This document shows, piece by piece, positions 8,383 to 43,727 of a stretch of DNA of 64,000 nt (within the stretch, counting starts at the first letter, position 1; each line of letters starts with the position of its first letter). A model generated the notes under the pieces. That model worked only from the letters and a program-made list of their open reading frames with translations, was not told where the DNA came from and searched no databases. The DNA is from Takakia lepidozioides (taxonomy: Eukaryota; Plantae; Bryophyta), in NCBI GenBank assembly GCA_030704615.1, contig CM060732.1:5518001-5582000 (forward strand). Reading direction: 5' to 3'. The translations under genes were made by a program, and so were the position numbers.

Positions 8383-9329
8383 CTATACTATATGCGCACA
8401 CAAATGCATGCATATGGAGGAATGTATGCGTGCATACAAATTTTAGATATGCATAGGAACAATTTTATATGCACAACACTTAAATAAGGGTACCCAAAAA
8501 AAAAAAAAAAATTGTGATTCATCTAATCTTAGGGTCCATAGTTAAAATATCAAATGATGGAATAAGAATATTGTATATAGAATATTCCATATTCATTGTA
8601 TTATTATTATTCCACATGGATGAGTGTAGGAATGGGAGATGAACATGTTGCTTTTATGGCTTTCCAACATGAGAAAAAAGGTCGAAAAATTAAAAAGTGA
8701 CAAGGCACGGCTCCTTGTTAGATACAAATGGTGAAAGTACGGGCTCTTCCAATGGTGGGAGTCTAGTTTGAAGTTCAGAATGGAGCAATGCTAAGGGAAT
8801 GCTAGGGAGCTTGACAATGCTAGGGAGCTTTGTTACATAGGTTTTGCAGTATCTATATATCTATCTTCTGAAACATTTTTATTTTACAAAACATAATGTC
8901 CATCAGAGATAGAACCCACAACCTATCGGGTATCAAGCCTAGTTCATACCACTACACTACCCATTCAGACTTGAAACACTAATGAAATGAAACACTAATG
9001 AGATAAAGATAGTCACCCTGTGTGTACATAACATGCCACAATACTCATAAGGGTTGATCTTACTAATGATGAAATTTGATAGTGCTGAAGTGCATGTCGA
9101 ACTTGCATTAAGGTAAAGGGATCTATGAAATGCAGTAGAGATCTATGTACAAACTATTACATAGATAAATCAAATGACAGGAAGATAACATGAAATCTGA
9201 TTTCAACACCATGTCATTTGCCCCATTTATTTTACCTTACACTAGAGAGAAATACATGTATCATAAAAAATAACAAAAAATTCGGACTGACAATGAGGAC
9301 AATGTATTGTATATGTAATTTCTAATTAC

Positions 9330-15002: not shown

Positions 15003-16046
15003 CGCCGCAAACAGCTCGTTGCCTCGGGGTGGTATAGTATAAGGCCGAGATGCGGCGCCTCCATCTCCTCTTCGCAACGGGAGTCTCCAGGGTGTAGAGA
15101 CTAGAGACGTGTTAAGTGCTTGTGTAGTTTGTGTGTGTTTGTTTGGGGGAGTGGCAAGGGATAATGTGCAAGTATACTAGACTACGTTAGTGTAGTAATG
15201 ATACCGGGTTAGTCATGTAGTAATGGCAACAAGTTTAACTGAATAAAAATAGTTTATTAACAAAAAAAGTAGAGGTAGTTTCATTGAATAGAGCATGGCT
15301 TGTTGGTAAGGTTGTGGTGTATTTTCCACAAGGTTGCGGGTTCAAACCTGCCCCCGTCAAGGAGAGCGGGGGAAAAGGGGGGCGAGGGCGGAAGGCAAAG
15401 GCCAAATTGGCCAAATCTGAAATGTGAACCTTTTTTATACACTCTGGCGTTAGTGTTTTTTGGACTACATGGGTTACACGTGGATCCTCAGAAGATGGTT
15501 GTACGATTGACATGTTACTTTGTGGCGGCGCCTTCATAATACAATATAAAGTAAGTGATAAAGTAACTAAATATTTTGTTATGGGTGTCTTAATCAATTT
15601 ATTGGTTTTAGAGCCAATTGTCGCCACAAATACTTGTACTCATTACTCATATATGAGTAATCAAAGAACAAATCAACATACATGTCATGGGATTTGATGC
15701 CGTCTAGTGTGTCAGTTCATAGTTGGACGATTAATCAACGATTGGTTGTAAAATAAATGGAAACATGCAAAGCATTTATGTTTCATATGCTCATAAGAAG
15801 AAGGCAGTACATTGGATTCTAAGATCTCAACAACGGCGCCGTCGTCTTAAAAATAGGGGATAGTCCATTTAGTTGTTTCTGTCAGAGAATAATATGGATG
15901 GAGCACATGCCTCAAAAAATTTGCACCTTCTGGATTGATGATACACATAAGTAATGTAAGCCATTTAATGTATTTGCATAAGGTCTTGCAAGATGTGCGC
16001 TTTCATTCATTTTGCATCTTCTCTCAAACTTTGAGGGCATTGCCAA

Positions 16047-19000
16047 ATGTCTACACCAAAATATGCAGTGCTTTCATGTCCACCTGATGCAAAAGTGGTT
16101 CGTTATCCTTGCAATGGAAACAAGTGCATTATCCCAGAACCTTGGTTATGCAATAGATTCAAACTTGTTCCGGGTTCAGTTTTTTTGGAGGATGATGGAG
16201 ATGATGATGCCTCCACAGTGTTGCTTCTAGTTTTCAATGACGGCCAAAAGCAATGGGAGTTGTTTCCAGACACTTTCTCTAAGTACCGTGTCACAGGTAC
16301 GAGCTATACACAGTCACATGATGAGAGGCACACTTCTATTGCAAGAAAGAACGATCAAGCTGCAACAAATGGGAGATGTAAATTGAAGGAGGAGGTTGCA
16401 GATTCGGCGAGCTTGGGGTCTCATAATTCGGATTGTGTTGAGGTTTCTAAGAGTGTATTTTGTGGATCTCAACCTTCCTCATCTACTCATACGGTCTTGC
16501 TTCACGACATGAAGCCTCGGAAAACTCCATTGGACAACACCACGTCTGATTGTTGCGAATCTGCGAGGGGTTTATCTTCATCTCCACGACTAGCAGGGGA
16601 GGCTACATCTGCATTTCCTTCTGGTGTGTTGTCCATTTTGAGTATCTTGGCCACTGCTCGGAGGAATGGATCAAAATGAGAGCTTTCTACCTTGGACTAT
16701 AGTCACATTCCAGTGCATCGTGTTCGGTGTCTTCCTCGAGCTTTTGATGGAAAAGTGATCCACGAACTCCCCCCCGTGGTCAAACTACGTACGGACCGTG
16801 GTTCACAGTCCCTCCAAGGCATGGACCGCAAGTTTGATGGTCATCCTTGGTGCAAGACCAATACCTACAATATGTCTGGTGTTCCAATCATGTGAAATGT
16901 AGTAAGGTTCTTTGTGTTGGAAAGCTCATATGTCAAAGCAGCACTTGCCCCTTCTTCAAGAAAGAAGGAGAACGGAATGACCGCTATTGGGAAGGCAATG
17001 CAAACAAGGTGTTCATTGCAGGAGCCCAAGTTCCATTCAACCAGTTCAAGTGTAGTTTCTGCAAAGAAAGACCTTTCTGTGAGGCGCATTGTGGGGCAAG
17101 AATGTACTATGTCACAAGTTCCCTTCCAACATATACACGTGTTGCAGTTCACGTTGGGTTTCATAACCATCCATGTGCCAAGGGCGAGAATAGAGAGGCT
17201 GCGGAAAATGCATCAAGCATGATTCAAGAGCACGTTAAGATGAAGCCATGGTCGACCCCGGGAGCTATTTCCTTGTCAATGGCCCAAAAGCTCTTGATTG
17301 ATCGAGTTCTTGTGGCTGATGGCACAGAGACAGTACGTCTTGAGGGAGAGGCTTTGGAAGATATTCTTGAAGAGTTTGCCCATGTTTGTAGCCCCAATGT
17401 GAAAAACAAGGTCGCATCTGCACGTGTCAATTCCATCATGTCCATATTGGAGTTGAAGCGTCTGAGTACATACCATTTCATTCACAGCAATCTCCTTCCA
17501 GGCCAGCATACTTCTCATCTCCCCCATGTTTTCAAGATGTCTGTTGCTGGTCCCGGGAGTGGTGTTGATCTTGTGCGTCGCATGAGTGAGGGGGATCTAC
17601 GCACAAGTTGGGTAGTATTTGACCATGTCAAACGCATCAAGGATTGGACAACTCTTGCGTGTCATGTCTATGAACCATATGTCAAGCGAATGATGACCAT
17701 TGCCATTTGCGATATGAAAACAGAGGATGCAGATGCTCAGGTGTTATTCTGGGAGATGATCAATGAACAAGCAAAACTTGCTGGCTTGAACAAACCAAAT
17801 TTTGTTGGCTTCATGGTGGATGCAGCAGGAGCGAATTGGGCTGCTGTTCGAAGGGTTTATGGATCTGATCCCAATGTCCCAATGGAAGGTAAAGAAAGAA
17901 CATGTTTATATCATTGGGCTGAAAGCCTCCGAAGACACACCAACGACTATATCTTGGAGGACTTCCATGAACGGCACACTCAGCTCTGTTATGAATGGAA
18001 AGATAGTGCTACCTTGGAGGATGCTACAACCACATACATTGCAATTTGGGCTTGGTGGCTCTCTTCAAGAGCATGCACAGAAAAGAGTCTGCCAAAACTA
18101 GATTCATGGCTTGCATGGTGGCACTACAGATATCGAATGTGGGGCCAATGGATGAGAGAGGACATGGATGTGGAGGCAGATGCAGATATGCCTACCACTA
18201 ATTTGTCTGAGGCAGTCCATTCTGCTTGGTGGAAGACAGCAGGCAATGGGAAAAAAATGAAGGTGGATCTATATGAGGCCACCATGCATGACATGTCACG
18301 AGCTCTTTTGCAGCAGGCAACATTTTACAGGCACACCACAGGAAAGACATGGGGGACGGGGCCCGACAAAGAGGAGCTCATGTTGCGTCAAGCAGCTAGA
18401 TCTAATAGCCCAGCAAAAATGGGTAAGGTTGTACGTGGCATAGTAGTTGGAACACCCATGCACATAAGGGGGGTTCAATTGGAGGGAGACAATCGCACTA
18501 TTCCAGTCAAACGCAAGTTAGGCGATGAGCATGGTGGGCCAAACGAATCTTGGAGGTGTGATATGAATGTAAAGACTGTTCCAGTGTGCGCCACTGGGAT
18601 GCCCAGTCCACACCAGCCATCTAGGTTTGTCAGCTCCAAATCAAGTCATGACATTCCTGGTTCTTCGACTTTCTGTGAGACAAATCCACATGTTGCTATC
18701 CCTCCACAGCCAATGCAATGGGGAAATCCAGTGAGAGAGACACAAGACTTTTCCGATGCATTGTTCAGGATTCAGCGGACAGGTCCTGCTTCCATGGTTC
18801 GTTGTTCTGCCTTGGTTGGAGTTTCCAAAGATAAATGCAAAGCGCTCATCAGGAAAGGTAAAGGAAGTCCTGCACCTTGCTTCACTGGCAAGTTACTAGC
18901 ACCGAACATGAAAGAACCAAAACTGCAAGTTTTTTGGTTTTGCCCCACAGATGTTTTGTCGTGTGTTGGAGGGACCGTGCCATCCTATTGCTTGGGAAAA

Positions 19001-19588
19001 CCGGGTATACCTAACGTGTGGCCTGTGAAGGTTGGAACCAACCTTACACAAGAAGAGGTGGACAACTTGACCCTTGCAGGTTTTCGACTAGTCCATCCTC
19101 CCAACGTTCCTGATCCGAACTTTCATGTGGGACAACTTCCAGTGGAACAACATATGCATCAAGGTGTTGTCCTTCCCGTGGGTAAGTATCCCACTACACG
19201 CTATGGGGTGCGCATTCGGCGTCGGGATCCGACTCCTCGACACTTGAGTCGCCAAGAGTCAGCGGAGACTCTTATTGCTGAGGTTCGTGGATTCAGAAAC
19301 GTGCCTCAGCCAGGTTATGGGAGAATTTACCAGCTACAAACAGAGGGATCTACCAGAGCAGGATTGGTTTACAATGTATACATTGGTCAGTTTCCATCTT
19401 GTGACTGTCCCGACTTTGATGAGCTATCTGTCAAGAAGAAAAAACAAACATATCTACCTTGTAAGCACATGTACTTCATGTACAACGTGCATCTAGGATG
19501 CGCCGGGGCTTATGAGATCCACCAACCTTCCCTTAGCCAGTTAGAGGTTAGGGCTATGCTAAAGAAGGACCCTAGTTCAACTTCTTAG
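16047..19588 (+). pseudogene. Mutator-family transposase (GCM/WRKY-like DNA-binding domain, DDE core, SWIM finger); one stop and one frameshift near the 5' end
   Basis: DGHPWCKT..C..C..HNHP; VFDHVK, FMVDAA, CLYH (CxxH), TTNLSEAVH; SWIM CDCPDF..CKH. Confidence 0.88.
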
Positions 19589-19899
19589 TGACACATGAAA
19601 TGCACAAAAAAGAACCTCTAACTTGTGCCGTTCATTTTCATGCATGTGACATGTAATTATCTTGTTACTACTTTATTCCAAACATGACACATAGCATTTG
19701 TTAGTACAAAAGTTCCTATTTTGGTTAAAATGGAACTTGTGTCCATATTTTGGTTAATATGAAACTATTTTTCTTGAATACAAGTTTGCAAACTATTACT
19801 TTGGCCAGGGATCTTGTATTCTCTTCAGTTTAAGGTGGTGCATTAGTTGGAGTTAGTGGTCACATGCATCTTTGACCATTGACTACTGATTTTGTTAGC

Positions 19900-21878
19900 T
19901 AAAGAAGATGAAGTAACCTCCCCACTCTCACAGAGTGTAGCTACCAGCCTGAACACCTCAGCTGGTCTTACCCCCGGTGTCGCAATCATGGTAGCCGAGA
20001 ACAATAGAGCCTGGCACACAGATGTGGCTGCTCCTAGCAGCACACTAGCTGTCGTAGCCTTGGCAACACTAGGTAGTGATGCTACCCGTGTAGCTCTCCT
20101 CAATGGCATAGTAACCTCCGCCTCGGTAACAGTCGGGCGAGAACTAGGTGCCATGGATGGCGTTGACACTGTCTCCGCCAATGTGAATGACTGAGGAAGC
20201 CTAGCCTGACGGCTTGCCTCCCCACGCTGTGCATCCAACTCCACCTCTGCACCTCGTGGCTCAGGAACTTGTGCTGCTCCTCGAGTCACGGCTGCAGCAG
20301 ACTCCACCTGCACTAGTGGTAGTGCTGTTCCGCACATGAATCCCATGCCTCCCATATCTCCTCCCTCAAGAGCAGGAGGTGGACCATCCGGCCTTGGAGC
20401 CGGTACCACCTGAGCTATAGCCATGGCAGCGAGCCTCTGCTCTAGCTGCTGAAGCCGGTTGGCCATGCCTTGGTCAACACCCTGACCTCCACGTCCTTGG
20501 CCATGTTGAGCTTGCCCTTGGCCTGCACCTCGTGCCTGGCCAACTCGTCCTCTCTGGGCTGCTCCACCTCGCCCCCGGCCACCATTGTTCCCTTGGAACT
20601 GGCCTGGGCGCAACTCAGGATGCAAACCATAACACTGGGCCTCTCTATGCCCGTGCTTGCCACAATGCCCACACTGCAACTGTGCAAGCTGTGCATGTAC
20701 CGGCCCTTTGCCTCCCTCTAGACAATCCTTCTTGACGTGGGGTCCTCCACATGTCCAACACACCACATCTGCCCATTGTTGGCCTGCAAATGAAGGGAGA
20801 GACCCCTGCATCTGAGGTCCTCTCTGCCCTTCCCTGAGCTTCACCTGAGCCCCCTTGTTGCCTTGAGCACGTTGAGGTAGTGGTTGGCTAGGAGCACCAC
20901 TACCCCATGGTGTCTCCTTAGCAAATCCCACCATAACCACTCGTTCCTCCACCATGTTGAGCTCTATCCGCTCTGCTAGCAAAAACACATTTGCTAAGGT
21001 GGGTTGGGACGCTTGTAGGAGAGTTGCATCCCGCACCCTTCTCCTCACCTCCTTGTCCAATATCCCATACCATAATTGGACTGCCTGAGCTTCCGTAACC
21101 CCTTGGTTACATTTATCAAGCGCCTCATGCGAGTGAAAGCCTCCCTCAAGCTCTCGGTCGGCTTTCGTTGGAACTCTTGCAAGCTCCGCAACTTCTCTGT
21201 CCTCACCCCTTGGTAGTTCCCTCTCAACTCTTCGAAGAACTCCACAACAGGGTTGAAGGCAGGCACGGATACTAGTGCTGGTGCGGTAGTGGCTTGGGTG
21301 GACGTCGTAGCTACTGTACCACCAGTCCCACTAGTCCCACTGCTGCTTGCTGAAGCTACCGGTGCAGCAGCAGGTGTAGCCACTGCCCTCGTGGCTCTAG
21401 TGCCCCTAGTGATGGAGACATAGTCGGGTGACCAGTACATCCTCCACTCCTCGATCTCAACCTCGTGCCCCCGCCTGAACTCATGGTAATCATCCATAGG
21501 CAGCCCCTCAAGGTGCTGAAACAGCCCCTTCCATGCCATGAAAGGCGTAAATAGTTGTGGATTGCACATTTGCTGCAAATCACACCAACTATCAAACTCT
21601 TGGATAAAATCATCCAACTCGATGGTGCCCACCGCCCCAGAGTACCTTCGTGGCCCCTTGGTAGCTCCATACATCTCCTCCATTGTGTCCCACAACAATG
21701 GCAAGGAAACAACTTGCACCGCCGGTATGAGTCCTCCCGATTCACAATCCGAATCAAGACCTTCCGTAGAAGACACATGAGGTGAAGGTGGCCTAAACCG
21801 CACACCTCGTCTCGTGTACCCACTAGTATCGCTAGTGCTCGAACCGGCACTGTCCCCAGCAACTAGTGGCACCTCCAT
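19900..21878 (-). pseudogene. G2 gag with two CCHC zinc knuckles (frameshift near 21050-21100)
   Basis: Capsid-like FQRKPTESLREAFTRM; knuckles CWTCGGPHVKKDC and CGHCGKHGHREAQC; Gly/Arg/Gln-rich tract. Confidence 0.85.
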
Positions 21879-30000: not shown

Positions 30001-30622
30001 AAAGCTGCTGACAGCTTTGTGGTCATACATGACTTCATATAAAGTCACCACTAAGTATACACCATTCCAATTAGTTTATGGTATGGAAGCTTTACTTCTA
30101 GTGGAATTCCTGTGACCTACCATGAGAACGGAATGGGGAAAGAGAATGGAATTGCAAGATTCAATTAAGGTCAGGAAACATGAATTATACCATGTGGAAG
30201 AAGTACGTGCTGATGCAGCTGATAACATGACCAGAATTCAGATGAAGAGAAAGGAACAGTTTGATGAAGGCAAGATAAAGACTTTTAAGACGGGAGATTT
30301 GGTTCTCTGGTTGCAAAAGAAGGAAAAGATTAAAGCTTCTAAGCTTAAATCACCATGGAAAGGACCTTATGTCATACAGAAGATGTATGATAACAACACC
30401 GCCATGTTACAAACCATTAACAAAGAGATGCTGGGAAGAGTCAATGTCAATAAGTTGAAGGGGTACAGTGGTATCTATGACAAACCATTGCAGCATGAAT
30501 TGCATGTTGAAACGCAAAATCAGTCACGGGCTGCGCCAGTGATACCAACGAAGTATGGAGCACTTGTCGCTAGGCCGAGCATATATGCCAATTGGGAAGT
30601 TGGAACATGGGATTTGACATAA
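27026..30622 (+). pseudogene. G3 pol: protease, RT, RNase H, integrase (stops, frameshifts, small deletions)
   Basis: LIDGGSG; MPFGLCNAPATFQR and YLDD; CDASG..NYSTTERE; WGLDFVGP, SDQGSHF, QGNGQAE; WKGPY. Confidence 0.95.
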
Positions 30623-31500
30623 GTCCCCAACAAATTAAGTGTCATGCTTATGGAACTCATAAGCATGGTCTGTTGAGGGTCATCATGGTGAGTTTGCTGT
30701 TGTTCTCCCTGATCCTCAACAGTGTGATGCCTCACGAACCACTCAGGCCATTGCCCCACCAGATTTTCTTCCTGAACCACTTCATTCGTCACCGGTGCTG
30801 CAGTGTCTTGACATTCTACCTGTGGTACCTCCGTCACAGGTGTGTGTATTATATGCACCGCAGGGTTTCCCCTGTACAACTGTTGCACCTCCGGAATCAC
30901 TGTGTCCTTGACCAGACCAGAATATTCATAGAGAAGGTCCCCCTTCTCAATTTCTGCCACCACCTGTTCTGTAGTGGGAATATCTAACCCTTCTTTCTCC
31001 AAATCAATTATTTCTGGTGGAACTGCATGGACAACTTGTGGTAACTCTGTGACAAGCCGATCATCTGGCTGTGATGGCTGTGATACTGAAGTAACTTCCT
31101 CTTCCCTCTCTGAAGGTCCCGCTTCCAATAATAGCAGTTCTCTGTGCTGTTGTGCCCCTTCCTGCACAAGAACTTGGGAAACATTATCATGCGGTTTCCG
31201 TGAAGCCAGTGGATCCGCCACTACAGTCTTTCCCCGCCTCGGTCTCTTAGTTTGGGGTTGCCCTGCCAGTCCACCCTCACTGTGTGAAGAGCCTTGCTCT
31301 TCCATTGCAGTGGTTTCAGTTTCAAACACTCCCATCTCCTTTCTTTCTCGAGCATCAAGTATGCCAGAATCAAGAATTATTTGAGCAATGATTGGGCCAG
31401 ACACTATGATAGGAGACTTTGCGGCAGTGCCCTGTAATCTTTTCATCTCCTCTACCAGTGCGTTGTACATTATGTCCGCCCATTCTACCTCTTCTCCTCT

Positions 31501-31577
31501 GGGGAATGCTTGCGCGTGAGCCTGGCCGCGTGAGCCTGTGAGCCTGTGAGCCTGGCTAGGCTCACGCCATGTCAGCA
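31501..31577 (+). repeat. MULE-B left degenerate TIR
   Basis: GCGTGAGCCTGGCCGCGTGAGC matches the reverse complement of the right end (GTGTGAGCCTGGCGCGTGAGC) at the same offset from the terminus. Confidence 0.8.
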
Positions 31578-32157
31578 AACTTCTACGTGTTCAGGCCGTA
31601 ATTCTGTGCTTACCCCCCCTATTACCGCGGATCAGCTGTCGCCTATGTCCTAATTTTTTATCCCTCTTCAAGGCCCCCACATGAATATTCTTTGTGGCCG
31701 AGAACAATGGCAGGTTTGCGGATGAATTATGATTGAGGTCATGACTTTGGAATGAGGAGATCGTCCACTAGAGAACTGAATATTAAAAGCAAACATTTTT
31801 TTTGGGCAAAGCAGTACATTCATTCCAACACACAATCATTTTTCAATTCCGCAATCCGAAGACCTATTTTAGGCAATCCCCAACTGTACTTACGGGAACG
31901 CGCAAAGAACTTGAAAAACAATTTGGAGATGGAAGCAAAACCAAAATACAATTTATTGAGCCTCGGTACTTGAACCTAAAGAAATATTGGAGGTTTCAGA
32001 GGAACCACTTCCAGAGTGTACAGCAATATCATCTATGAATACAGCAGCACATCCATTACGTTTTTTTTTCCCTCGACCTTCATGGAGATGCGAGTACAGT
32101 GTTTGTTCGGATAATACCCGTGCGCAAGCTTCCGCGTAAACCGGCAAGCGGTTGGAT

Positions 32158-35100
32158 CTAGGGGGGCTCGGGGACATGTAGTATCCTTGGAAACCGAAAG
32201 GCGTCTGCTGATTCGATGACTGGTGCTGAACTCTGCAAAGCAAGAAGATGAATGGTGGTATATGTTAACATCCAGATATAGACAACGAAAGCCACTATTT
32301 CTCGAATGGGAACGACACAAGGAAATGCAACATATTTTGCACGAGTACACAAGAACTTACTCACACTCAAAATCGGAGTACACATCCAGATCCTCGTCAG
32401 GCGCTTCGGGCTCCTCCAGAAGTCCCTCTGTGGATGGGGCAGAAGTAGTGCCCGACTCAAGCTGACGAAGCTCGCTTGAGAAGAGCTCCGTATCAGCTTC
32501 CATGCCGAAGAAGTGCCTTCCGGCGCTCTTGCAAGCATGAAAACATGCTCCTGCAAATCCAAGAAGAACGAGAAATAAAAACCGGGTTTCCCTAAGGTCA
32601 CTGCCCATATGTCAAACACAATGTGAAGGGCCCCACCTGTGCCCATAGACAAGTCAACCACTCGTCCACCATGACGGCTGCATGTCTCCACCAAAGTCTG
32701 CATGAAAGCTGGAGATTTCTCCCGTGCACCTCTCCAAGGGACACCATTCGTCCTTTTCATAGTCCGACCCGAGTCGACGTAATTGAAGATAACATCATCC
32801 TCCACAGGCTCGCAGGTGGGGTCAATGTGAGCTGCAAGGTCCCTCAACTGAAACTCAGCAACACCAGCAGGAAGAGTGTCCGTCCGCCTCACCAGGCACA
32901 AAGCTTCGAACACTCGTGTCTGTCATTAATCACGAAGACAGAATGAGACAGAAGACATAACCCACCATTTTGATTTACCGGAAAACCACGAAACATCAAT
33001 TGAAAGGAACCAACTCACTTTTGGCCCCGGGAACTCGCCCTTCGTAAGAGGCAGAGTATTGATGCATGTCCAAGTTTTGATGACACGAAACCCGGAAGCT
33101 TTCATGTAGCTGAAAAGAGTTCTTCGAGCCGACATGTCCTTTGACTGCATGAGAAGAAGAGCCCCCGAGTCCGAAAGGAACTTGTTGCTGAACGAGAAAG
33201 CCCACTGCCAGTAACGAGAATCCGATTTGTTCCAAGTCGGGGTCGAATTGGAAGGAAACACATCAGGGACAGGAAAACCGTCAGGAATGTCCAGCACCAC
33301 AAGGTCAGTCGCGTATGCCTGTTGAACTCCATTCACCCATTCCGGACTTTTTGTGACCTACAGCCAAAAACATGAGACATTGTAAGAAGCCCAATCCAAA
33401 TCTAACAGGAGATCAATCCCCTGGACAAGCCACAACAAGCTGCCAAACACAATTATTCATACAACAGTTTAGACATAAGTTTTCACCTGAGTGAGGAACG
33501 AAACAAGCATGTCCCACGATTTCGAGGGCACCCCTTTGAATGTGGACTTCCTCGACTCCATCATTGAAAGAAAACTTTCATTCAGCACCTTACGATTGAA
33601 CTGGCCCAAAACCCTGGAGGGATGTTCTCTCGCCTCGAAAACTTGCTCCCTGGACTTTGAAGTTCTCCTATCCCTCCTTGCGGGAGAAGGCTGTCTTTCA
33701 GGAACCTCTGACGGTCCCTGTCCTTGCGGAGCTGCACTTTTCCCCTTCCCCTTCGGATCCCCGACAACCTTCCCCTTTCGTTTTGGAGTAGCAGTTTTCT
33801 CGGGCTCTTTTGCAGCCAGAGCCGAAATGATTCTGTCCTGGATGTCTTTCTCAGCCAATGGGGCAATCGCTGCGGCATTGTCGTTCAGGTTTCTCAAAAC
33901 AACTTCATCGAATGGGGTGTCCTGTTTTGGCAGGTCGAGGTACCACCCACAGTCTCGGAAGTGCGCCCTGCTCCAGTCTTTGGCAATACCAGCCGTGTAC
34001 ATTGTCTTGTCATTGGAGGGGTCAGCCCATGAATAGATGAAGTCTGGGTCATCGCTAAGGTACTTTCCCGGTATGAGGATATGATACATATACCTGAATC
34101 ACATACAAAAAACGCAGACAGTCATTCGATCAGAAAACGAAATAGAACACACATCCGGAAAAAGATATTGAAATGCAGGAATGCAAACTGAGAATTCTAC
34201 TTTTGAAATCCCGAATTAACCTTGCGTTGACGCAATGTTCATTCTAGCAGAAATGGGGAACACCAAATGATAATGTTGTATTGATAGAGACAACGAATGG
34301 AAACGCGATTCAACATTGCTTCAACGCAAGGTTGTTTTAGGGTTGAGAGGAAATGGAAAACACTGCATGAAAACTACCATCAGACTATGTACTGGTGCGG
34401 ATATTCAACATTGCGTTGGCGCAATGTTGAAATCCTCTGTTGAAACACATGTCAATGGTATCTGATAATCATAAGTTTCCTACAATTGTATTGAAATAGG
34501 TGGATGGCTGCGGGAAATTTGCAGCAAACCATACCGCCAAACAACCTTGCGTCAACGCAAGTCTGTTTGTTGGTACAGTTAAAGTTGAAAATAGCATTTC
34601 AAACCGACTCAAAACAGACTTATGTTCATCTTGGCAGCATTGGAACTGGATTTGAACTGCCCAAAACCACAGGAAAAGCTACATAGCCTGACACTTCATC
34701 AACCTTGCGTTGACGCAAGGCTGATTTTCCAGTCAGTTTATCCCTTTCACATTCAGAAAAACGGAATTATGGGATACCCAGGTATAGGTAAGTGAAACCA
34801 GGACAATGGGAATCAACCTTGCGTTAACGCAATGTTGCTCGACTGCACATGCAGAGCCCTCAGAGATCTCGCAAAGCACTGCAAATTCGCAATTCCTTAT
34901 GGAAAGAACGACACAAGATTGCAGAAACATGCCCTTCAAGCACCAATTTTGATTCAAGGAGGTCACACCTGTACAACACTCGCTTCATTGCTTGCTCGCT
35001 GTTGTACTGGTTTTTGAATTCGTAAGACCTGGAGATTCCTTTCTCTTTCTCAAACTCCCTGAAGAAGCAGTTGTTCCAGACAGCGAGCTTCCATCTCCTG

Positions 35101-37750
35101 ATATAGGCCTCCAGTGTGATCCGGGGGCAAGCCATCTGGATTTTGTAGTCTGCCATCGACTCAGCAAGTGCAGCCACTGCACGTTTTTCTAACTGCAACA
35201 AGAAAGCTCGTAAGAATTTTCAAGAGGTTACGGAGCATCAAAAATGTCTGAAAATGGTTTGGTTCAAACCTTACCTGGCTCCAGAATGTGGCTTTGTGTA
35301 GCCACTGGTCGAATGTGTGGTCGCTAACAACTCTTATTGCTTGTGTCTTCGGGTCCCTCTCTGGAGTTGGGAACATGTTCGTGTCTCTCACAAGAGGATC
35401 CGAATTCCATATCTCCAACCACCTGATTTTGGTTGCATTGTCCACCATTGAAATGGAAAGGCGATGTAGTTTCTCTTGAGTCATTTCTGGCTTGGAGCCA
35501 TACTTATCATAGTGTGCTTTCACCTGTTCCAGAAATTCCGTGCCAAGACCTGGGTCTGCTATCCGGATCTGTTTGTCGAATGCACTCATGAGGTTCTTCC
35601 TTTGATTTTTCATCTCGAACTTCATAATGTCCTCAAGCCCAGTTGCAGACCGCTGCTCTTCTGTGTGGGAATCATAGTACTCTGCTTTCGCCTTCAATCC
35701 AGTTTCTGCTATTTCTTGCTGCATACATAACAGGTAAAAAGAATCAAAGACTGCAATTTCATCACAAAATTTGCAGTATTAACAGGCAAAAGGTGTCAAA
35801 AAGCTTACAGTGTACATGTACTCAAGAAAAGCCTCCCTTGTCAAGCTGTACCATGTGCTTGTCTTCTTCTCAGCACACCTCTTCATCTGCTGAGGACTGA
35901 GCACGTTCGTGAATGACTCCAGTGGCATCAGCCCTACCTTCTGGATGCGGAATAGAGTGTGGCACAGATTGGTCGTCACATGAGATGTTTCATTGGACCT
36001 GGAAAAACCTTCAACTCATAAGATGATTTCAAATTGTCGAAACAAGTAACAGACACAAAGTTGGAAACTTACTTGTTTATGTCGTGCATGGCTGTCAAGA
36101 GCTGCGTGACACGTCCTTTGTGATCGAGAACCATGGAAACCACGCTCCAGTGCCATTCGATTCGTCCGAGTGCAAGCTTGAAATGTAATCCATCCAGGCA
36201 AGCAGTCTGTGGTTCCCATCCCAGACAAAAAACATCTTTCCCATGAATGCTTTTGTGGAGGCCTTTTTGGACAGCTTGAACTCGAACTCCCTGTTTACAT
36301 CCCGCCAGCATGCATCCCAACCTTGCTCAATGTCCTCTGTTACAAGACACTCCTCTCCTTTCGTGTTCATAGTGGATACGTAGAACACTGCTGATCCCTT
36401 GACATAGCCGTGAACAAAGTCGTTCTTCAACTTCGTTATATCGTTCCTCAAAGCCGGTCGAACAGCGGGCATGGAGATCATCCTGCACAGCGGAATGACC
36501 AGGTTTCCGCCCGGAACCTCCATCGACAGAATCACCTTCGACGAGTTCACTTTTTGCCCACCAATTATCTCCTCGGCCTTGTCTTCATAGTTTCCCTCCA
36601 ATGCATCTTCCTCACCTTCACCTTCTGACGCGGCCAAATCTTCCCCCTCGGATTTCCTTTTTCTTTTCCTCTGCACAGAATGAATTATCTGTGAGTGACA
36701 GATTGAGCACCCATGGATCAACATTGCTTTGACGCAAGGTTGATTGATGGGGATGTAGTTTAGACTGAAAAGCATACAGGAAAGACTTTTCAAGCAAAAA
36801 AGTGCTTTGCGTTGACGCAGGGTTCTTTTGGGAGCTTCAACTAATCAACTTTCCCTACCTTACATTTCAGGATATGAGAGATCGGACGCCTCCATTGAAC
36901 AAAAAACTCATCAAAACCAGCCTTGCGTCAACGCAATGTTGATTCATGTGCGGCATCTGTTCGTTTCACTAGAAGTTCTATCATACACAATGGAGGTAGG
37001 CATCAACCTTGCGTTGACGCAAGGTTGATTGCGAGCTCTCGGATCGGTGTTGAACAAACACAAAAGCTACAGGAAAAGTTGATTGCTGTCTCTTCTTCTT
37101 CTTCGAACTTGATGATGCGTCGCAAGCATCCATGTCTGTCTAGCTTGATTGTAGAGCAGCATCTGCACTGTTTTCATGCACAATATATACACTTGGGAGG
37201 TCGACTTCAACCTTGCGTTGACGCAAGGTTGATGTCGACCTCAATGCTTAGCAAGAACCAGAAAGAATCAGAGAGAGAGAAAGAGAGTTCATAGCCACCT
37301 CCGGTTTCTTCTTTGCACTTGATGATGCTCCTGACGCATTCAATCTTTCCATTTCGTCTGGAGGTAGCATGCTTCCAAGGAGGTCCCGATGGTGCGAAAC
37401 AAGGGCAGACGGCATCGTTTCCGCGTCCGTTTGTTCTCCCTGCTCTTTGAAGACCTGTTTCTCTACTCGCAGTGCTTCCTCCCTAGCCCAGCTCACTTCC
37501 TCGTCCTCCCCCCCTTCTATTGGAGGTTGCTCATCGGTCGCCTCCGGGATCACTTCAAGACCTTCCTCTCCACACTGCGGTTGCAGAATCCTGTTCTGCC
37601 CTTCGTCTTCCTCTACGCCGGATGTTTCTTCTCCCATTCTAAGTTCCCGTCTCGCCTTCCTCATCCTCTCCTTAGCGCGTGCCCTTTGCTTCTTTGATGT
37701 GAAATAAAGTGTTCTTCGACGCTTGCTTCTCCCTCGGAATGGGGTCACCG
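32158..37750 (-). CDS. Multi-exon gene: ParB/Srx-like domain plus beta-class N4/N6 DNA methyltransferase-like domain (MULE-B copy; at least one frameshift, exon limits approximate)
   Basis: IPLCRMISMPAVRPAL..GKMFFVWDGNHRLLAW (36.1-36.6 kb); TDLVVLDIPDG..WAFSFSNKFLSDSGALLL (33.0-33.35 kb); WRGAREKSPAFMQTLVETCSRHGGRVVDLSMGTG (32.64-32.9 kb); ACFHACKSAGRHFFGMEAD (32.36-32.55 kb). About ten GT-AG-bounded exons. Confidence 0.82.
34218..34837. repeat. Six intronic palindromes, consensus CAACMTTGCGTYRACGCAAKGTTG
   Basis: Copies at ~34218, 34310, 34404, 34542, 34698 and 34813. Confidence 0.9.
36717..37240. repeat. Five intronic palindromes of the same family (first intron)
   Basis: Copies at ~36717, 36806, 36918, 37002 (ATCAACCTTGCGTTGACGCAAGGTTGAT) and 37199-37240 (extended by GGTCGAC...GTCGACC). 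Confidence 0.9.
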
Positions 37751-38387
37751 TCTCTGCAGAATCCAGGGTTGCAAAGACAATAACGAGAAGAGGGAAAAAA
37801 GAGGACTATGGGAGGTTCATCGCAAGGCCTTCAACGCCAAGATGTTCGCTCGCAACGTTCAGTGCGCCACTGACTCATTCCACATGCATGGCGAACACGT
37901 GTCCATCTAATCGTTATGAAATATCGGCGGAGATCATTGGATCCTCATCCATTCAAAAACCGTTGGGGTCTAATCACCTCCCATCTGAAAAAGTTCGTTA
38001 TTCTGGCATGTTCCAGAGGAATGTCAAGTGTGTACAGTTGTACAGCGGTGTAGGTGCCGTTAAAATTAAATGGAAATGGGCATCTCTTCTGGCCTCTCTG
38101 ACATGACAACCAAACGGCGGCTCTGTCAGTCAATCTGTCAACGAATGCACTGGTGGGGCACTTGTGAAAAAACAGTTGGATTCTAGGATTAGGGCTGACA
38201 TTATGACCATGCGCTTGGTTTGCATGGGGAGACATTTCACAGAAGTGGAAACCCGCGTTAGGAGATCTGCAAGCCGGAGCGATACCTGCAATTCTCTGTG
38301 AGGACGCCAAAAACTCCGCTCCCACACAATTTGCATTCACAAGCACGGTCGGACTGTGAACTCTACTTTCTGAAGCAACATCGACAT

Positions 38388-41300
38388 ATGGCCTCCCAGG
38401 CCATGGGCTCCCTTGACGCGGACTTCTTCAGTGAGGACCACCCTGTGCCATTTTCTTACGAGGTGGAAGATGATGGTTTTGCGCTGGTGCATGAACACGT
38501 CCTCGCAACGCAGTTTCGGTTGGAAAATGGAACTCTATTCCTTCAAAGGGAAGTGTACGATGCCAATGGAAAACTCTCAAGTACGTGTTCCAGAAACCTT
38601 CGCATACTGCACCAGCCACACAATGGAGAGTGCCTCCAGGCAGATACAGGGTGCTCAGTGCCCCTCTGAGACAGTCTGCAGGATCTTTCCTTACTCCTGG
38701 CACGGCAGCATCAGTGGCCCAGGAGAAAACACCCGTGGTTGTCAAGAAGGAGACGAGTACCGTTAACACTGTAGTTGAGCTTTCGGACTCATCCTCCGAT
38801 GACACATGTGCAATACCGCCCGTGGATCAGCCATGTCCACCTGTAGAAGCAGATGTGGAGGAGATCACCAGTGTCATTCCTAAACTGAAAGCCATGGGAG
38901 GGATGGCAGGTTTCAAGAGTGAGTTGAGGGGGATAGACTGGAGCACTTTCAATATTCAGAGGGTGGCATTCTTGCCGGAATCTTTTGATGGTAATACTGT
39001 TTTCGAGCTGCCTCCTCCTGGTCGCTTGGGGGCATTTCTAGTCTCCTGGAAGGAATGGACAAAAAGCACGATGGGCACCCTTGGTGCCGCACAAAAACCT
39101 CCAATATTCACAACAACGACAAACTCATATTCAGGCGAACAGTCTGTAATGGGCACCTGAAATGCGAGAACATGAAATGCAGACACTTCGCATTGTCAGG
39201 TGTGCAAAACCAAAGCGAATGGGATGGTGTCAGTGAGAATCCATTCAAGCCTGGGGTGACACCACCATACAGTAACACTTTTGTGTGCAAGTTCTGTAGG
39301 GTACCACCTTGCTGCCTTGCTTTGTGTGGCGCCAGAATGTATTATGTGGTGCATCGATTCAAAACCCTGACTAGAGCCTGTGTCCATTTCGGTTTTCACA
39401 ACCACCCTGTGTCCAAGGGGGATTATAGGGAGAGCGTTGACACAGTCTCGCGTCTGATAAGGCAAGAGTTGGATACCAATCCAACTGGAACCACATCTGC
39501 AATTGCCATGGGGGCGAGCAAGTCCTTTCTGGAAAGCCGTATTCTGTGTGCATCAAATTCGGTTGGAGGAATACTGGAGGGATCGGCTTTGGACACTGTT
39601 ATGGACCATTTCTCAACTTTGACTTCTCCAAACATTAGGAATCAGGTGAACGCTTTAAGAATGGGCTCTGGGAGCCGAGGTTATATGGACAATATTATGG
39701 ATTTGAAGAAAAGGAGCATGTATGACTACATCCAAGACAGCGTTTTCCCGGGACAAGGAGCCAGGAAAGTGTTCTTGTTCAAAATGTCCACAAAAGGTGA
39801 GGGCAGCGGGGTCAGCCTGGTTAAACGTATGCAGAAGGGTGGTGATCTTGGCAACTGCTTCCTTATGTTCGATCATGTCAAGAGGGTTAAAGACTGGACC
39901 ACAATGGCATGTCATGTTTACGACCCTGTGTACCAGCGGGTCATGACAATTGCAGTGTGTGACATGCAGTCAGAGGACACAGATTCACAACAGCTCATGT
40001 GGGAAGCTCTCATTCGAGTTATGGCCTCCAATGGTCTCCCATCTCCCAATTTCGTTGGTTTCATGGCCGATAGTGCTCAAGCTAACTTCAACGCTGTCCG
40101 CATTGTGTTCGGGACGGGAGACCCAAAAGTGCCAATGCCTGGAAGAGAACGTACATGTCTTTTCCATTGGACACAATCCCTGGACAAACACACAAAGACA
40201 TACATCAAGCCAGATATGCAGACTATGCATCGCCAACTGTGCAACCAGTACAAGGACGCCAAAACTATGGGGGAAGCGAATACATTGTTCCAGACAATTC
40301 GTGCCTGGTGGTACTCATCTGGAGCGGCATCGGAGGACAGCATGAGGGCACTGCAAGACTGGTTCGCATTTTGGCACTTCCGTTACCGACAGTGGGGAGC
40401 GGCCATGACAACGGTGAGTGGTTTGTATTCACCTTCGTTTGGGTGCTTCGGATATATCTTTCAGGGTCCAATCCTAATATCGGGTTTCTGTTTTTTTTCC
40501 TTGCAGCATATGTCCATTGAGGAGATGGCGGACATGCCTTCTTGCAATCTTGCAGAGACAGTGCACAATGCCTGGTTGCAGCAATCCGGCAAAAAAGGGA
40601 GAGATTTGTATGCGGCGACGGCCGATGACCTCATTCGTGCTCTGCAGCAGCAAACCAGATATAGGTCATTCTTGAGGGGTGGCCTTGGTGGCAAAGGTCC
40701 GGACAGGAGCGAGTTGATGTTGCGGGCAGCTGGAAGATCAGGGGATCCCAGCAAAATAGCGCGGGCAGTGAGCATATGTGCAGATGGCACCCCTCTCGTG
40801 GGAAGAGTTCCCCATCTGGAAGGCGAAGAGAGATTCGGGTCTTGCAAACGGAAATTGGACACCCCTCCCGGATCGGATGCAGATTCCCATAGGCCGGACA
40901 GGGTGAACTTCTCGACGCCACGTGTTCACTTGGATCAGAGATGGAATTGCGGAACATCCACAGGTGAGGGCTACTCTGGCCCAGACCGGACCCCTGCATC
41001 AAGCATTGTCACTGCAATGGTTGAAGACCACAACGTGGTGCCGCATATAATCGAGTCCATGGGCTTGGACGAGGTTTGGCATATAGAACGCACAAGTGCT
41101 GGATCTCGTGTGAAATGCGCGGCGATCAGGGCCACCAATCATGAAAAATGTACATCATTAATCTCCAGAGGGAAAGAACGCACTGCAGCTCCTACATTCA
41201 CGGGTTTGTTTCTCCCTTACGGACAAGGCGAGGCAAAGAACCACAAGTTCTGGTTCTGCGCTGACGATTGTGGGAGATGTGTGCATGGTACAGTGAGGCC

Positions 41301-41889
41301 TTCCGTGGTAAGGAAGCCTACTCCACCAACCGTGTGGCCTGTGAAGATGGGCACAGGTCTCACTCACCGAGAGATTGCAATGCTGGAAGAGGCGGGTTTC
41401 TCCCTAGCCAGACATTCCATTGCACGTGAAGGTGCTTCAAGTGGAAGCGGTTCACGGGTACCTCCGCCTGACGCTCACTTGTGGCCAACCAGACGGAACG
41501 GGAAGCTTGTTCGACGATTCCCTCCAACCGCAGAACACTACGGCAAAATTGAGTCCGCCAGAATGCTTCACGCTCGTGTTGCGGGAACAATGGAAGTGCC
41601 TGATCCAGGGTATGGTCGGGTCTTCACCATGATCTCATCCGCATCTGCGCTGCAGGACAGGACGTACGAAATCACTGTTTCCAATTTTCCCAATTGTACA
41701 TGTCCAGATTTTGTTGGTATGCTTTCAAGTAGTTTGGGAAAGAGAGGGAAGTTCATACCGTGCAAACACCTTTACTTCGTCTTCTTGAGAAGGATGGTTT
41801 GTGATCCAAAGCGCGACTTCTTCATTCACCAAGCCACTATGAGTTTCAACGAAGTCAACACACTTCTACAGCGGGATACAAGCCCATAA
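38388..41889 (+). CDS. Mutator-family transposase (GCM/WRKY-like DNA-binding domain, DDE core, SWIM finger); frameshifts in the 5' part, 93-nt intron at 40414-40506
   Basis: DGHPWCRTKTSNIHN..C..C..HNHP; MFDHVK, FMADSA, CLFH, CNLAETVH; SWIM CTCPDF..CKH. Alignable with the MULE-A transposase throughout. Confidence 0.9.
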
Positions 41890-42068
41890 AAATCGGTGTT
41901 TTCCTTGACTACAACTTGTAATGGAATGACTATTCAAGTCCAGTGACTCTCAATGTATGACGTCAAACATCTTTGCTATGCGTGGGTCAATGCATTTGTC
42001 GCATTGGTTTGTCATTCTCTTTTCATTAGCAAACACAAGAAACTACCTTCAGATAGACAGATGATCAA

Positions 42069-42261
42069 ATCAACCTCGTCTCAACACGAGGTTTACTTGA
42101 AGTTCTCCAAATCCTCCTTGTGTTGACACAAGGATGATTTTAGTTCTCAGAAAACAACATCGTGTCAACACGAAGTTCATTTTTGTTCCAGGAAAACAAC
42201 CTTGTGTTAACACGAGGTTTTGTTGAAGTTCTCCAAATCCCCCTTGTGTCGACACGAGGTT
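42069..42261. repeat. Five variant palindromes, consensus AACCTYGTGTYRACACRAGGTT, downstream of the transposase
   Basis: Copies at ~42069, 42116, 42156, 42199 and 42242. Confidence 0.85.
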
Positions 42262-42414
42262 CATTTCAGTTCTACGAAATGAAGCTCCTGTTAACAGAAG
42301 GTTGAACTCCAGAAGCCCAAAACCCTTCATCCGTTTCACCTTCATGTGGTGAAATCAGCAGTTCGGGGCTCCACGGTTATAGGCCCACCTTCTTTGTGGT
42401 GACGTGTCATGACC

Positions 42415-42543
42415 TGGACCAGGCTCACGCCACATCAGCATCAGCGCCATGTCAGCAGCGTGAGCGTAGGCTCACGCCACGTCATCATTGTGTGAGCGTA
42501 CGCTCACACGCTCACGCGCCAGGCTCACACGGTAGCGTCGTTG
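42415..42543 (-). repeat. MULE-B right degenerate TIR
   Basis: Clustered GCTCAC(G) motifs, inverted relative to the left end. Confidence 0.8.
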
Positions 42544-43727
42544 TTCTCCTCTCAGGGCTTTGAGTATTTCCTCTGTGAAGGATCTGCTCAAATACTGTTG
42601 GTTCTGTTTCATGGCAAACAGAACGTTCAATACCTGGCCTACCTCCCTTAGCCCTGGGTACACGGCCTTGGTACAAGCATAACCCTGAGTTTTAAAGAAA
42701 CTCCTTTCTTGGAATAAGTCCCCTATTTGCAGTCTTGCCCTGTGCTCCTCCACATGCACCTGACCTGCTGGCAATCGAAACAATTGCTGTAGGTATAGGG
42801 GAGTAATTTCTAATTCAACTCCCTTCACCGTTGTTGCTCCTGTCCTAGGCTCAAAGTTCTGCAAGAATTGTAACATGTACTGTCTATGGTGCAATGTCCA
42901 ATCTTTGCTTTGCAATCCTTCCAATCGCAGCTCCTTCAGTAACTTTACCGCCTGTGGAGTAGCAATCGTTATTTCTGCAGGATTGTGGTGCTCTTCACCC
43001 TGATTTCTTCCATTCCTCTCACTCTCTTCATTCTAGACCCACAGAAAGGTTTTGGCTGTAATGCAGGGCACAAAGCATAAACGTATGGTTGCCACAAAAA
43101 GCTATGGGTAATTTCTTGTAAGCCTGCGGGGCTTGCAAGCATCGATTAAGAGAAAAGATTCGCTCTGTTCTTCTGTGCCTATGCCACTGCGTAAGTAATA
43201 TTGCGAGCGTATAGTCTGTTAGTTCCTCCATAACTTCAAAGCTATAGCATTGATGGTTTGTCCCGTCGAGACGCCCGTTACTTAGAACGACGCCGACTCT
43301 TGCGCTTAAATTCCCTCCAATTTCTTGATCCCTTTTCTGGCTTTCGATTGGCTGTAACCGCTGTGACTGGATTTTAGATTTAATTTTCTTTAGTGGACTT
43401 TTCCTGCTGGACTGTCCACTACGATAACACATGTGACAAGAATTTCGTTTTTCTGTACTTGCCGTTTGTTCTGTTGCCCTTTTTCCGTATTCATTAATGG
43501 GCCCGCCATTCATCCGAATTGACGTGCTAAGTAGGTACTTTGACGGCCATTCTTGTCCTCTTTCTTGATGACACCTGTTCTTGCACTTCCTTCTCAGCTG
43601 TGTGTCGCGCCCTGACTTCCACGTGTCCCTTTCTAAACTGGCTTCCGTCCTTTCTTCCGCCGGCCATTTCCCTGAAGTTATCCTGCGTCCACCTGTCACT
43701 GATTCTATGGATTGTGTAACCCTAGTA

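Follow-up and report, generated by a model that had tools for sequence, protein, structure and literature searches.

A 64-kb stretch of the genome of the bryophyte Takakia lepidozioides (hereafter the window; contig CM060732.1 of assembly GCA_030704615.1, positions 5,518,001 to 5,582,000, forward strand) contains a two-gene DNA transposon of the Mutator superfamily, referred to as element B (window 31501-42543), which sits within another coding sequence. Besides a transposase gene, element B carries a second gene, the cargo gene, whose protein of approximately 960 or more residues comprises an N-terminal domain of predicted ParB/Srx fold, a middle region of approximately 450 residues of unknown fold, and a C-terminal methyltransferase-like domain. 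The same two-gene layout is found in a second, deeply diverged element of the window, copy A (approximately 8384-19900), and in related loci from metagenomes, and this transposon clade of non-seed plants has long carried the gene pair under selection. Furthermore, at least two lineages, A and B, possess palindrome arrays that are private to the lineage.

The boundaries of element B are defined by an insert of 11,043 bp and by two flanking copies of the nonamer TTCTCCTCT; this target-site duplication (TSD) of 9 bp lies within the 8-11 bp typical of Mutator-like elements (MULEs). When the insert and one copy of the 9-bp repeat are taken out, the minus-strand open reading frame (ORF) of the right flank (...EEILKALRGE) and the ORF of the left flank (RGEEVEWADIMYNALV...) form a single frame at the empty site (...LKALRGE followed directly by EVEWADIMYN...). 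The 9-bp duplication and the in-frame host ORF at the empty site therefore identify a genuine insertion with target duplication. The interrupted ORF contains no Pfam domain and is probably part of another repeat. Terminal inverted repeats (TIRs), the second hallmark of a MULE, are present in degenerate form: the inverted ends are approximately 80% identical over approximately 40 nt (positions 6-45) and contain GTGAGCC-type repeats, and their outermost 5 nt do not match each other. The CpG observed/expected ratio amounts to 0.69 in element B, compared with 0.48 in copy A and 0.31-0.45 in the repeats that flank B; the higher ratio of element B is consistent with its being the younger insertion. 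A 166-residue ORF at window 30122-30622 on the plus strand resembles in sequence the C-terminal part of a Ty3/gypsy-type integrase, and its surroundings are rich in transposons.

The DDE/CxxH/SWIM transposase that the original prediction, made from the letters of this DNA, had ascribed to the element was recovered as a SWIM finger and as candidate DDE and CxxH residues. Pfam detects a SWIM finger in the main transposase ORF (E 2e-4) and nothing beyond it; the MULE model PF10551 is not reached. None of the 89 database homologues carries a precomputed Pfam domain, and these homologues, including one of 1278 residues (P0282) with a query coverage of 99%, are also unnamed; the family is too diverged for PF10551. 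The transposase core (residues 200-560) was modelled with AlphaFold2 (AF2) from 59 sequences at a predicted local distance difference test (pLDDT) score of 75. Its nearest folds in the ESM-Atlas are PF10551 (MULE) clusters, including the MuDR family and FAR1, with template modelling (TM) scores of 0.56-0.66, and its language-model neighbours are likewise MULE clusters. Its best match in the PDB is the IS256-family transposase ISCth4 (E 2e-4), which outranks the P element and Hermes; IS256 elements are the prokaryotic kin of Mutator. The candidate catalytic residues are D273, D339, C368-x-x-H371, and E501 in the numbering of the ORF. The Mutator-like assignment is therefore supported by the fold, the SWIM finger, and the length of the duplication, with a direct Pfam match missing. 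Coding blocks upstream of the main ORF are conserved between A and B, and the transposase gene therefore begins 5′ of that ORF. An in-frame GT-AG intron of 93 nt lies inside the ORF of element B at 40414-40506 and is lacking in copy A.

The cargo gene lies on the minus strand, divergent from the transposase gene, and contains at least eight coding exons. Eight conserved minus-strand blocks were delineated by comparing A with B, and the junctions were then read. All introns run from GT to AG with a pyrimidine tract, and every phase is consistent; exons 1-8 sum to 2876 nt, that is, 959 codons minus one base. The motifs on which the original prediction was built (VWDGNHRLLAW, DLVVLDIP, EKSPAFM..VVDLSMGTG, and GRHFFGME) were all found, in the order given. 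Exon 8 possesses an alternative donor at 32364, and a stop codon may be formed over the junction with exon 9, depending on the choice of acceptor. For a candidate 5′ exon at 37248-37748, conservation with copy A was not detected.

Splicing of the gene is documented by assembled contigs. RNA runs are not on record for this stretch of DNA; the sources are two runs labelled with the same species and available as contigs (33 and 49 Mb), whose RNA nature was guessed. Contigs in these runs are 85-97% identical to parts of the cargo gene. One of them omits exactly 32636-32551 (intron 7), another omits 33486-33358 (intron 5), and a third omits 138 nt beginning with the donor at 32364, evidence of an additional intron behind exon 8 and of a ninth exon. 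The letters of a loose contig end at 32638 correspond to exon 8 of a paralogue (ASFHACKSA). Close paralogues of the cargo gene are thus transcribed and spliced as modelled; if the contigs were processed DNA copies instead of RNA, splicing would be implied all the same.

A ParB/Srx fold for the N-terminal domain is supported by structure prediction and structure search, in agreement with the motif-based proposal. The evidence was obtained from a model of the closest homologue, P0001 (57% identity to exon 1 of element B), which was modelled with AF2 from 54 sequences at a pLDDT of 87. Among the top 50 PDB matches of this model in Foldseek, all but one belong to the ParB/Noc/KorB/PadC/sulfiredoxin superfamily, with weak E-values (0.015 upwards) and probabilities of up to 1.0. 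Superposition on Caulobacter ParB (7bm8) gives a Z-score of 8.9 and a root-mean-square deviation of 2.1 Å over 94 residues. The most conserved motif among the 54 homologues is G-N-H within V-W-D-G-N-H-R-L, in which G163, N164, and H165 are invariant or nearly so; the D-G-N-H-R of the cargo protein, a motif of nucleotide-binding type, matches the G-x-x-R/H-R loop that binds phosphate in this superfamily. Used as a profile, exon 1 retrieves 700 proteins at E<1e-3 among 1.84 billion representatives, mostly ORFs of the size of an exon, and the four longer proteins among them are hypothetical proteins of Adiantum ferns. Profile searches of the PDB sequences with the ParB and exon 7 alignments returned nothing relevant.

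Homology of the C-terminal region of approximately 240 residues to the circularly permuted beta-class N6-adenine/N4-cytosine methyltransferases is supported by profile-profile alignment. The domain is divided among the end of exon 5 and exons 6-8. No natural ORF covers exons 6-8 or exons 2-4 in 80 related loci, and the methyltransferase domain and the middle region were therefore not folded as single chains. Instead, a family alignment of 16 rows (B, A, and metagenome loci joined exon by exon with jackhmmer) was compared by hhalign with an alignment of 55 YhdJ-type PF01555 enzymes. It scored 92% (E 6e-7) over 209 columns along one collinear path through motifs IV, X, I, and II, which corresponds to the beta order proposed earlier and extends from DLIFADPPYN in the YhdJ-type enzymes and DLVVLDIPDG in the cargo protein to VLDPFAGS...GRKFIGIE and VVDLSMGTG...GRHFFGME, respectively. 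A single YhdJ sequence sufficed for 90% over 198 columns. The controls scored far lower: 0.2% for the reversed alignment, at most 9% for 20 column shuffles, at most 26% for 10 block shuffles, 32% for the unpermuted methyltransferase PrmA (only around motif I), and under 1% for two unrelated proteins. Furthermore, the exon 7/8 splice restores the spacing of PF01555, GxG + 9 residues + GR..G-x-E (VVDLSMGTG + 9 residues + GRHFFGME), and the language-model features of exon 6 indicate amino-methyltransferase families. When the products of exons 6, 7, and 8 were co-folded as separate chains with S-adenosylmethionine (SAM), the score was 0.41 against 0.04 for the best control, a weak result with a partner pLDDT of approximately 49; at calibration the mark was reached by 51 of 78 solved complexes and by 2 of 108 mismatches, passes at or below 0.60 are often wrong, and the co-fold is ancillary only.

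The gene pair extends well beyond element B. The transposase ORF of copy A (16847-19588) is 38% identical to that of element B, and its cargo exons lie on the minus strand at 13343-9828 with at least two frameshifts, near 13076 and at 10597-10606. A scan of JGI metagenome contigs, whose names we take to denote peat-moss-associated samples, yielded 80 loci with the same exon order. The transposase-cargo pair, which the original prediction had proposed to seek elsewhere, does recur: in at least 14 of these loci (11 distinct contigs) a transposase homologue lies upstream on the opposite strand. In fern proteins the ParB domain is joined to motif IV (P0071, P0137) or to motifs X/I (P0108). A relatives search with the C-terminal part of P0108 found P0108 alone, and the middle region of P0137 did not connect to the window copies in jackhmmer. 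At the DNA level, copy A is 67-71% identical to several loci, and this identity is confined to exons. Nei-Gojobori estimates for copy A against related loci, over 359-665 codons, give approximately 0.19 nonsynonymous substitutions per site (dN) and 1.6-2.0 synonymous ones (dS, near saturation), a ratio of 0.09-0.13 that is alike in the ParB exons and, where they are covered, in the methyltransferase exons. This ratio of approximately 0.1, and the recurrence of the gene head to head with the transposase, therefore indicate that the cargo is integral and selected and no neutral passenger. In two of the loci, L007 and L008 (Ga0116231_10001224 and Ga0116229_10000134), the cargo is approximately 70% identical to copy A at the DNA level, has a frameshift in exon 7, and has no transposase homologue detected within 10 kb on either side.

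It is very improbable, and largely refuted, that the cargo is an ordinary host gene or fragment captured in the manner of Pack-MULEs and evolving neutrally, or that its domains are chance matches to motifs. MULEs often capture host fragments (PMC6446971), Pfam gives no match to the cargo, and both window copies carry frameshifts. The last are, however, expected in individual dead copies, and the near-neutral dN/dS of about 1 that the original prediction had named as fatal to its proposal is contradicted by the observed ratio. Capture is also difficult to reconcile with the spliced transcripts and with the same gene, exon order, and orientation by the transposase across lineages 38% identical and in other plants; chance is opposed by the fold and profile evidence with its controls.

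The non-coding DNA of element B contains 16 related palindromes, as first noted, of which 11 are internal (34218-34836 and 36720-37230) and 5 are terminal variants (42072-42261); the unit is 28 bp long (ATCAACCTTGCGTTGACGCAAGGTTGAT). Outside the element they are absent from the 64-kb window (chance expectation 0.00-0.05). The terminal variants read TG/CA precisely at the CG of the internal copies (TTGTGTTGACACAA vs TTGCGTTGACGCAA), which may be the pattern left by deamination of methylated CpG or may mark a distinct variant. Copy A contains approximately 10 copies of an unrelated palindrome (GCGCCGGCGC core) at 13687-14793, in the same position relative to its ParB exon as in element B. Repeated private palindromes are also present in a few metagenome loci. 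The CpG observed/expected ratio of the element B arrays (0.76-0.81) is barely above that of the rest of B and gives no sign of specific protection. Separately, GGGACTCCCAAGTTGGAGTCCC-like and AGTCAAAYTGSCARTTTGACT-like palindromes recur approximately 200 bp apart in many related metagenome loci (for example L013:15480-15700, L020:11395-11625, and L037:14916-15137) at varying distance from the ParB exon; this pair may represent element ends or an unrelated small repeat.

The most likely mechanism, though far from assured, is that the cargo product works in cis as an accessory factor, directed by the palindromes, and modifies or protects the DNA of the element. The ParB-methyltransferase-like protein would then be the accessory factor of its clade, akin to mudrB, VANC, and the Harbinger Myb-like protein. 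It would recognise the palindrome arrays of its own lineage (between the genes, in an intron, and beside one end) and would act in cis on the element DNA, either by an amino-methyl mark, N6-methyladenine (6mA) or N4-methylcytosine (4mC), or by SAM-dependent DNA binding. The element would thereby stay expressed or competent for transposition, through anti-silencing or through help in transposition. It appears unlikely that this widespread bryophyte and fern Mutator clade encodes an active, sequence-directed amino-methyltransferase (6mA/4mC) that the ParB-like module would load at lineage-private palindromes, so that every lineage would put a chemical label or shield on its own copies.

Several observations weigh against a palindrome-directed factor acting on DNA. 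At its thresholds, Pfam finds neither ParB_N (PF02195) nor a methyltransferase in the exon products or in ten homologues, four of them from Adiantum. A DNA-binding domain was not identified in the cargo protein, whose middle region was not folded as one chain; a true ParB, a CTP-dependent clamp, reads parS via a helix-turn-helix, which did not turn up in the cargo protein. Exon 1 of element B has a 1-nt deletion near 36160, exactly where four homologues change from frame -1 to frame -3, and with their frameshifts the cargo genes of both A and B are dead in this window. The description of element B as a complete 11-kb element accordingly holds for its TSD, its degenerate TIRs, and the in-frame host ORF, and does not hold for cargo exon 1. 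Strict palindromes are not enriched in the 2 kb upstream of the ParB exon across 43 metagenome loci (0.48 vs 0.44 per kb), and the core of the palindromes includes TGACG, a site of the bZIP type, so that they could be read by host factors or by the transposase. Finally, motif IV lacks (D/N/S)-P-P-(Y/F/W) in every copy seen, its variants being D-I-P-D-G (B), D-C-P-T-G (A), and N-V-P-E-G, with D/N-[IVM]-P-x-G/N in relatives, and the glycine loop of motif I reads S-T instead of G-x-G in many metagenome copies. Judged from motif IV, catalysis may be lost or altered.

Two of these observations, the lack of general enrichment and the TGACG core, favour the view that the palindromes are unrelated to the cargo protein. 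They would then be sites for the transposase, with its zinc-finger N-terminus, or for host transcription factors at a bidirectional promoter or enhancer, or else by-products of local duplication, and the cargo would act elsewhere, for example genome-wide or on RNA. The position of cluster 2 between the divergent genes and that of the terminal array beside the end at which MULE transposases bind agree with this view, and a preprint reports that a MULE transposase alone can activate cognate copies (10.64898/2026.08.24.746577). It is nevertheless improbable: cluster 1 lies deep in an intron, at a distance of 3 kb from the promoter region and approximately 3 kb from the left end, with the right end 7-8 kb away, and A and B, diverged as they are, have both retained a private array in the same place beside the ParB exon.

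The state of motifs IV and I, on the other hand, argues for a pseudo-enzyme in which the ParB-like and methyltransferase-like modules would serve as nucleotide- or SAM-sensing or DNA-binding scaffolds without DNA methylation. Such a protein would aid transposition, for example by bringing the ends into synapsis, by holding on to the element after excision, or by promoting its reinsertion, a role that has been proposed for mudrB and the Harbinger Myb-like protein. Strong purifying selection in spite of the non-canonical motif IV would fit a role that is non-catalytic yet essential; helper proteins have been described in two-gene MULEs (PMC6446971), and ParB-family proteins act as DNA clamps or bridges. 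We nevertheless consider this explanation somewhat unlikely. A, B, and several relatives retain motif X and the G-x-G loop together with the acidic residue of motif II (G-M-E / G-L-E), which suggests that at least SAM binding is preserved; the conserved D-x-P of the catalytic loop could still bind a flipped base. The coordinates of all features of element B are summarized in Table 1.

Table 1. Features of element B and of its insertion site (window positions).
Feature	Position	Strand	Basis
TSD, left copy, TTCTCCTCT	31492..31500	.	9-mer repeated at both flanks
TSD, right copy, TTCTCCTCT	42544..42552	.	9-mer repeated at both flanks
Interrupted host ORF	30520-31500 and 42553-42924	-	in-frame read-through after removal of the insert
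Left degenerate TIR with GTGAGCC subterminal repeats	31501..31577	+	alignment to the reverse-complemented right end
Right degenerate TIR with GTGAGC(C/G) repeats	42397..42543	-	repeat content, alignment to the left end
Upstream transposase coding segments (5′ exons)	38876..39108	+	tblastn blocks common to A and B
Main transposase ORF, 944 residues, MULE-type DDE core and C-terminal SWIM finger	39055..41889	+	Pfam SWIM, predicted fold
Candidate 5′ exon of the cargo gene, low-complexity ORF of 166 residues	37248..37748	-	ORF only
Cargo exon 1, acidic/basic leader and ParB/Srx-like domain (IPLCRM ... VWDGNHRLLAW ... MHDINK)	36073..36670	-	conservation with copy A, borders
Cargo exon 2	35809..35998	-	GT-AG borders, phase; conserved with copy A and metagenome loci
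Cargo exon 3, middle region of unknown fold	35275..35718	-	conserved block; a contig ends at 35273
Cargo exon 4	34969..35192	-	phase-2 junction to exon 5 restores an Arg codon in A and B
Cargo exon 5, conserved N-terminal part, low-complexity linker, first methyltransferase-like helix	33487..34093	-	joint 33487/33357 in a contig, run X1
Cargo exon 6, motifs IV (DLVVLDIPDG) to VI	33019..33357	-	borders, phase, profile alignment
Cargo exon 7, strand 7, variable region, motif X (EKSPAFMQTLVE), motif I (VVDLSMGT-G)	32637..32919	-	joint 32637/32550 in a contig, run X2
Cargo exon 8, rest of motif I (GTG + 9 residues + GR), motif II (FFGME), acidic tail	32360..32550	-	borders, contigs
Cargo exon 9, mostly 3′ untranslated	32103..32232	-	contig joint, sequence
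Palindrome cluster 1, 6 copies, within intron 4 of the cargo gene	34215..34840	.	repeat search
Palindrome cluster 2, 5 copies of a ATCAACCTTGCGTTGACGCAAGGTTGAT-like unit, between both genes, directly upstream of the exon 1 acceptor	36717..37234	.	
42-bp tandem array, 5 variant palindromes, adjoining the right end	42067..42303	.	repeat search

The cargo gene had been regarded as derived from prokaryotes, and this part of the original prediction was not borne out. Searches by tblastn with exon 7 and the ParB domain gave only chance-level matches in phage and plasmid collections, and a scan of 185,579 prokaryote genomes for the FVWDG pattern found no relative; a prokaryotic origin, for which the architecture is the only argument, is not supported by these comparisons. 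The term domesticated is likewise misleading, given that the cargo gene is still part of the element. Prokaryotic contamination was considered and rejected on account of the spliceosomal introns, the TSD within a eukaryotic ORF, and the spliced contigs. As far as can be told, a MULE clade with a conserved fusion of ParB/Srx and beta-class methyltransferase-like domains is undescribed, and a full-text literature search found no paper that combines MULE or Mutator with ParB. A survey of MULE diversity names mudrB, mutB, vanB, and vanC as the extra ORFs known so far, with no mention of methyltransferases. The ParB-linked methyltransferases reported in eukaryotes are only Dam-like enzymes of chlorophytes and chytrids and haptophyte enzymes from phage ParB loci (PMC4738411), and the Marchantia enzyme DN4MT1 is a beta-class 4mC enzyme of the host, described without mention of ParB (10.1101/2021.02.12.428880).

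The closest known systems each share part of this arrangement. The VANDAL21/Hiun MULEs of Arabidopsis (PMC5735166, PMC10398659) are likewise Mutator elements that encode an extra protein, have lineage-specific arrays of short motifs in their non-coding parts, and have given rise to the idea of a factor acting on its own copies; VANC binds such element-specific motif arrays in the non-coding parts of VANDAL MULEs (PMC5735166). By contrast, VANC is not homologous to ParB or methyltransferases, has no enzyme-like fold, and causes loss of 5-methylcytosine, whereas the motifs of element B are 28-bp palindromes of putative function. The fusions of ParB with N6/N4 methyltransferases in phages, plasmids, and integrative and conjugative elements (PF02195 + PF01555; PMC4738411, PMC5512222) combine the same two folds in the same order, with a D-G-x-H-R-type ParB motif and a permuted beta-class methyltransferase. 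The cargo protein differs from them in approximately 450 extra residues between the domains, in a D-x-P-x-G motif IV, in at least seven spliceosomal introns, and in the lack of any detectable sequence relative in the phage, plasmid, and prokaryote collections. MuDR (mudrA/mudrB) and other two-ORF MULEs (PMC6446971) share 9-bp duplications and a transposase accompanied by a conserved second gene that the element requires. Transcription of mudrB is convergent, however, and its product shows no recognised enzyme fold; the TIRs of MuDR are long and well matched. Bdelloid rotifer N4CMT (PMC8885841) and Marchantia DN4MT1 (10.1101/2021.02.12.428880) are eukaryotic homologues of beta-class amino-methyltransferases, the former with a link to transposon control. 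Unlike the cargo gene, both are host genes that cluster with prokaryotic enzymes by sequence and have proven 4mC activity, and they neither contain a ParB domain nor are borne by transposons.

Fungal KDZ DNA transposons are reportedly associated with TET/JBP genes, as Iyer et al. are said to have described in 2014. Such elements resemble element B in being eukaryotic transposable elements with a conserved DNA-modification enzyme, as do the retrotransposons with C5-methyltransferases of charophytes and dinoflagellates (PMC5890265). Both differ from it in enzyme family (C5-methyltransferase or dioxygenase) and in transposon class, and neither contains a ParB domain or a private palindrome array.

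Eukaryotic transposable elements seldom bring along DNA-modification machinery of their own, the known cases being the C5-methyltransferases of some retrotransposons and TET/JBP in fungal KDZ elements. What sets the present case apart is a cut-and-paste clade of land plants whose second gene joins two typically prokaryotic or phage modules and is selected and expressed, with a separate palindrome array in each of the lineages A and B. An active protein would supply plant genomes with 6mA or 4mC and would represent a new form of counter-defence by transposons; if, furthermore, the active enzyme were loaded at private palindromes, the system would be a eukaryotic, transposon-borne counterpart of the self-methylation by which phages and plasmids withstand host defence. 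If it is a pseudo-enzyme, it would still be a new type of MULE accessory protein. The elements of this family are thus candidates for studying sequence-specific self-recognition by transposons outside Arabidopsis.

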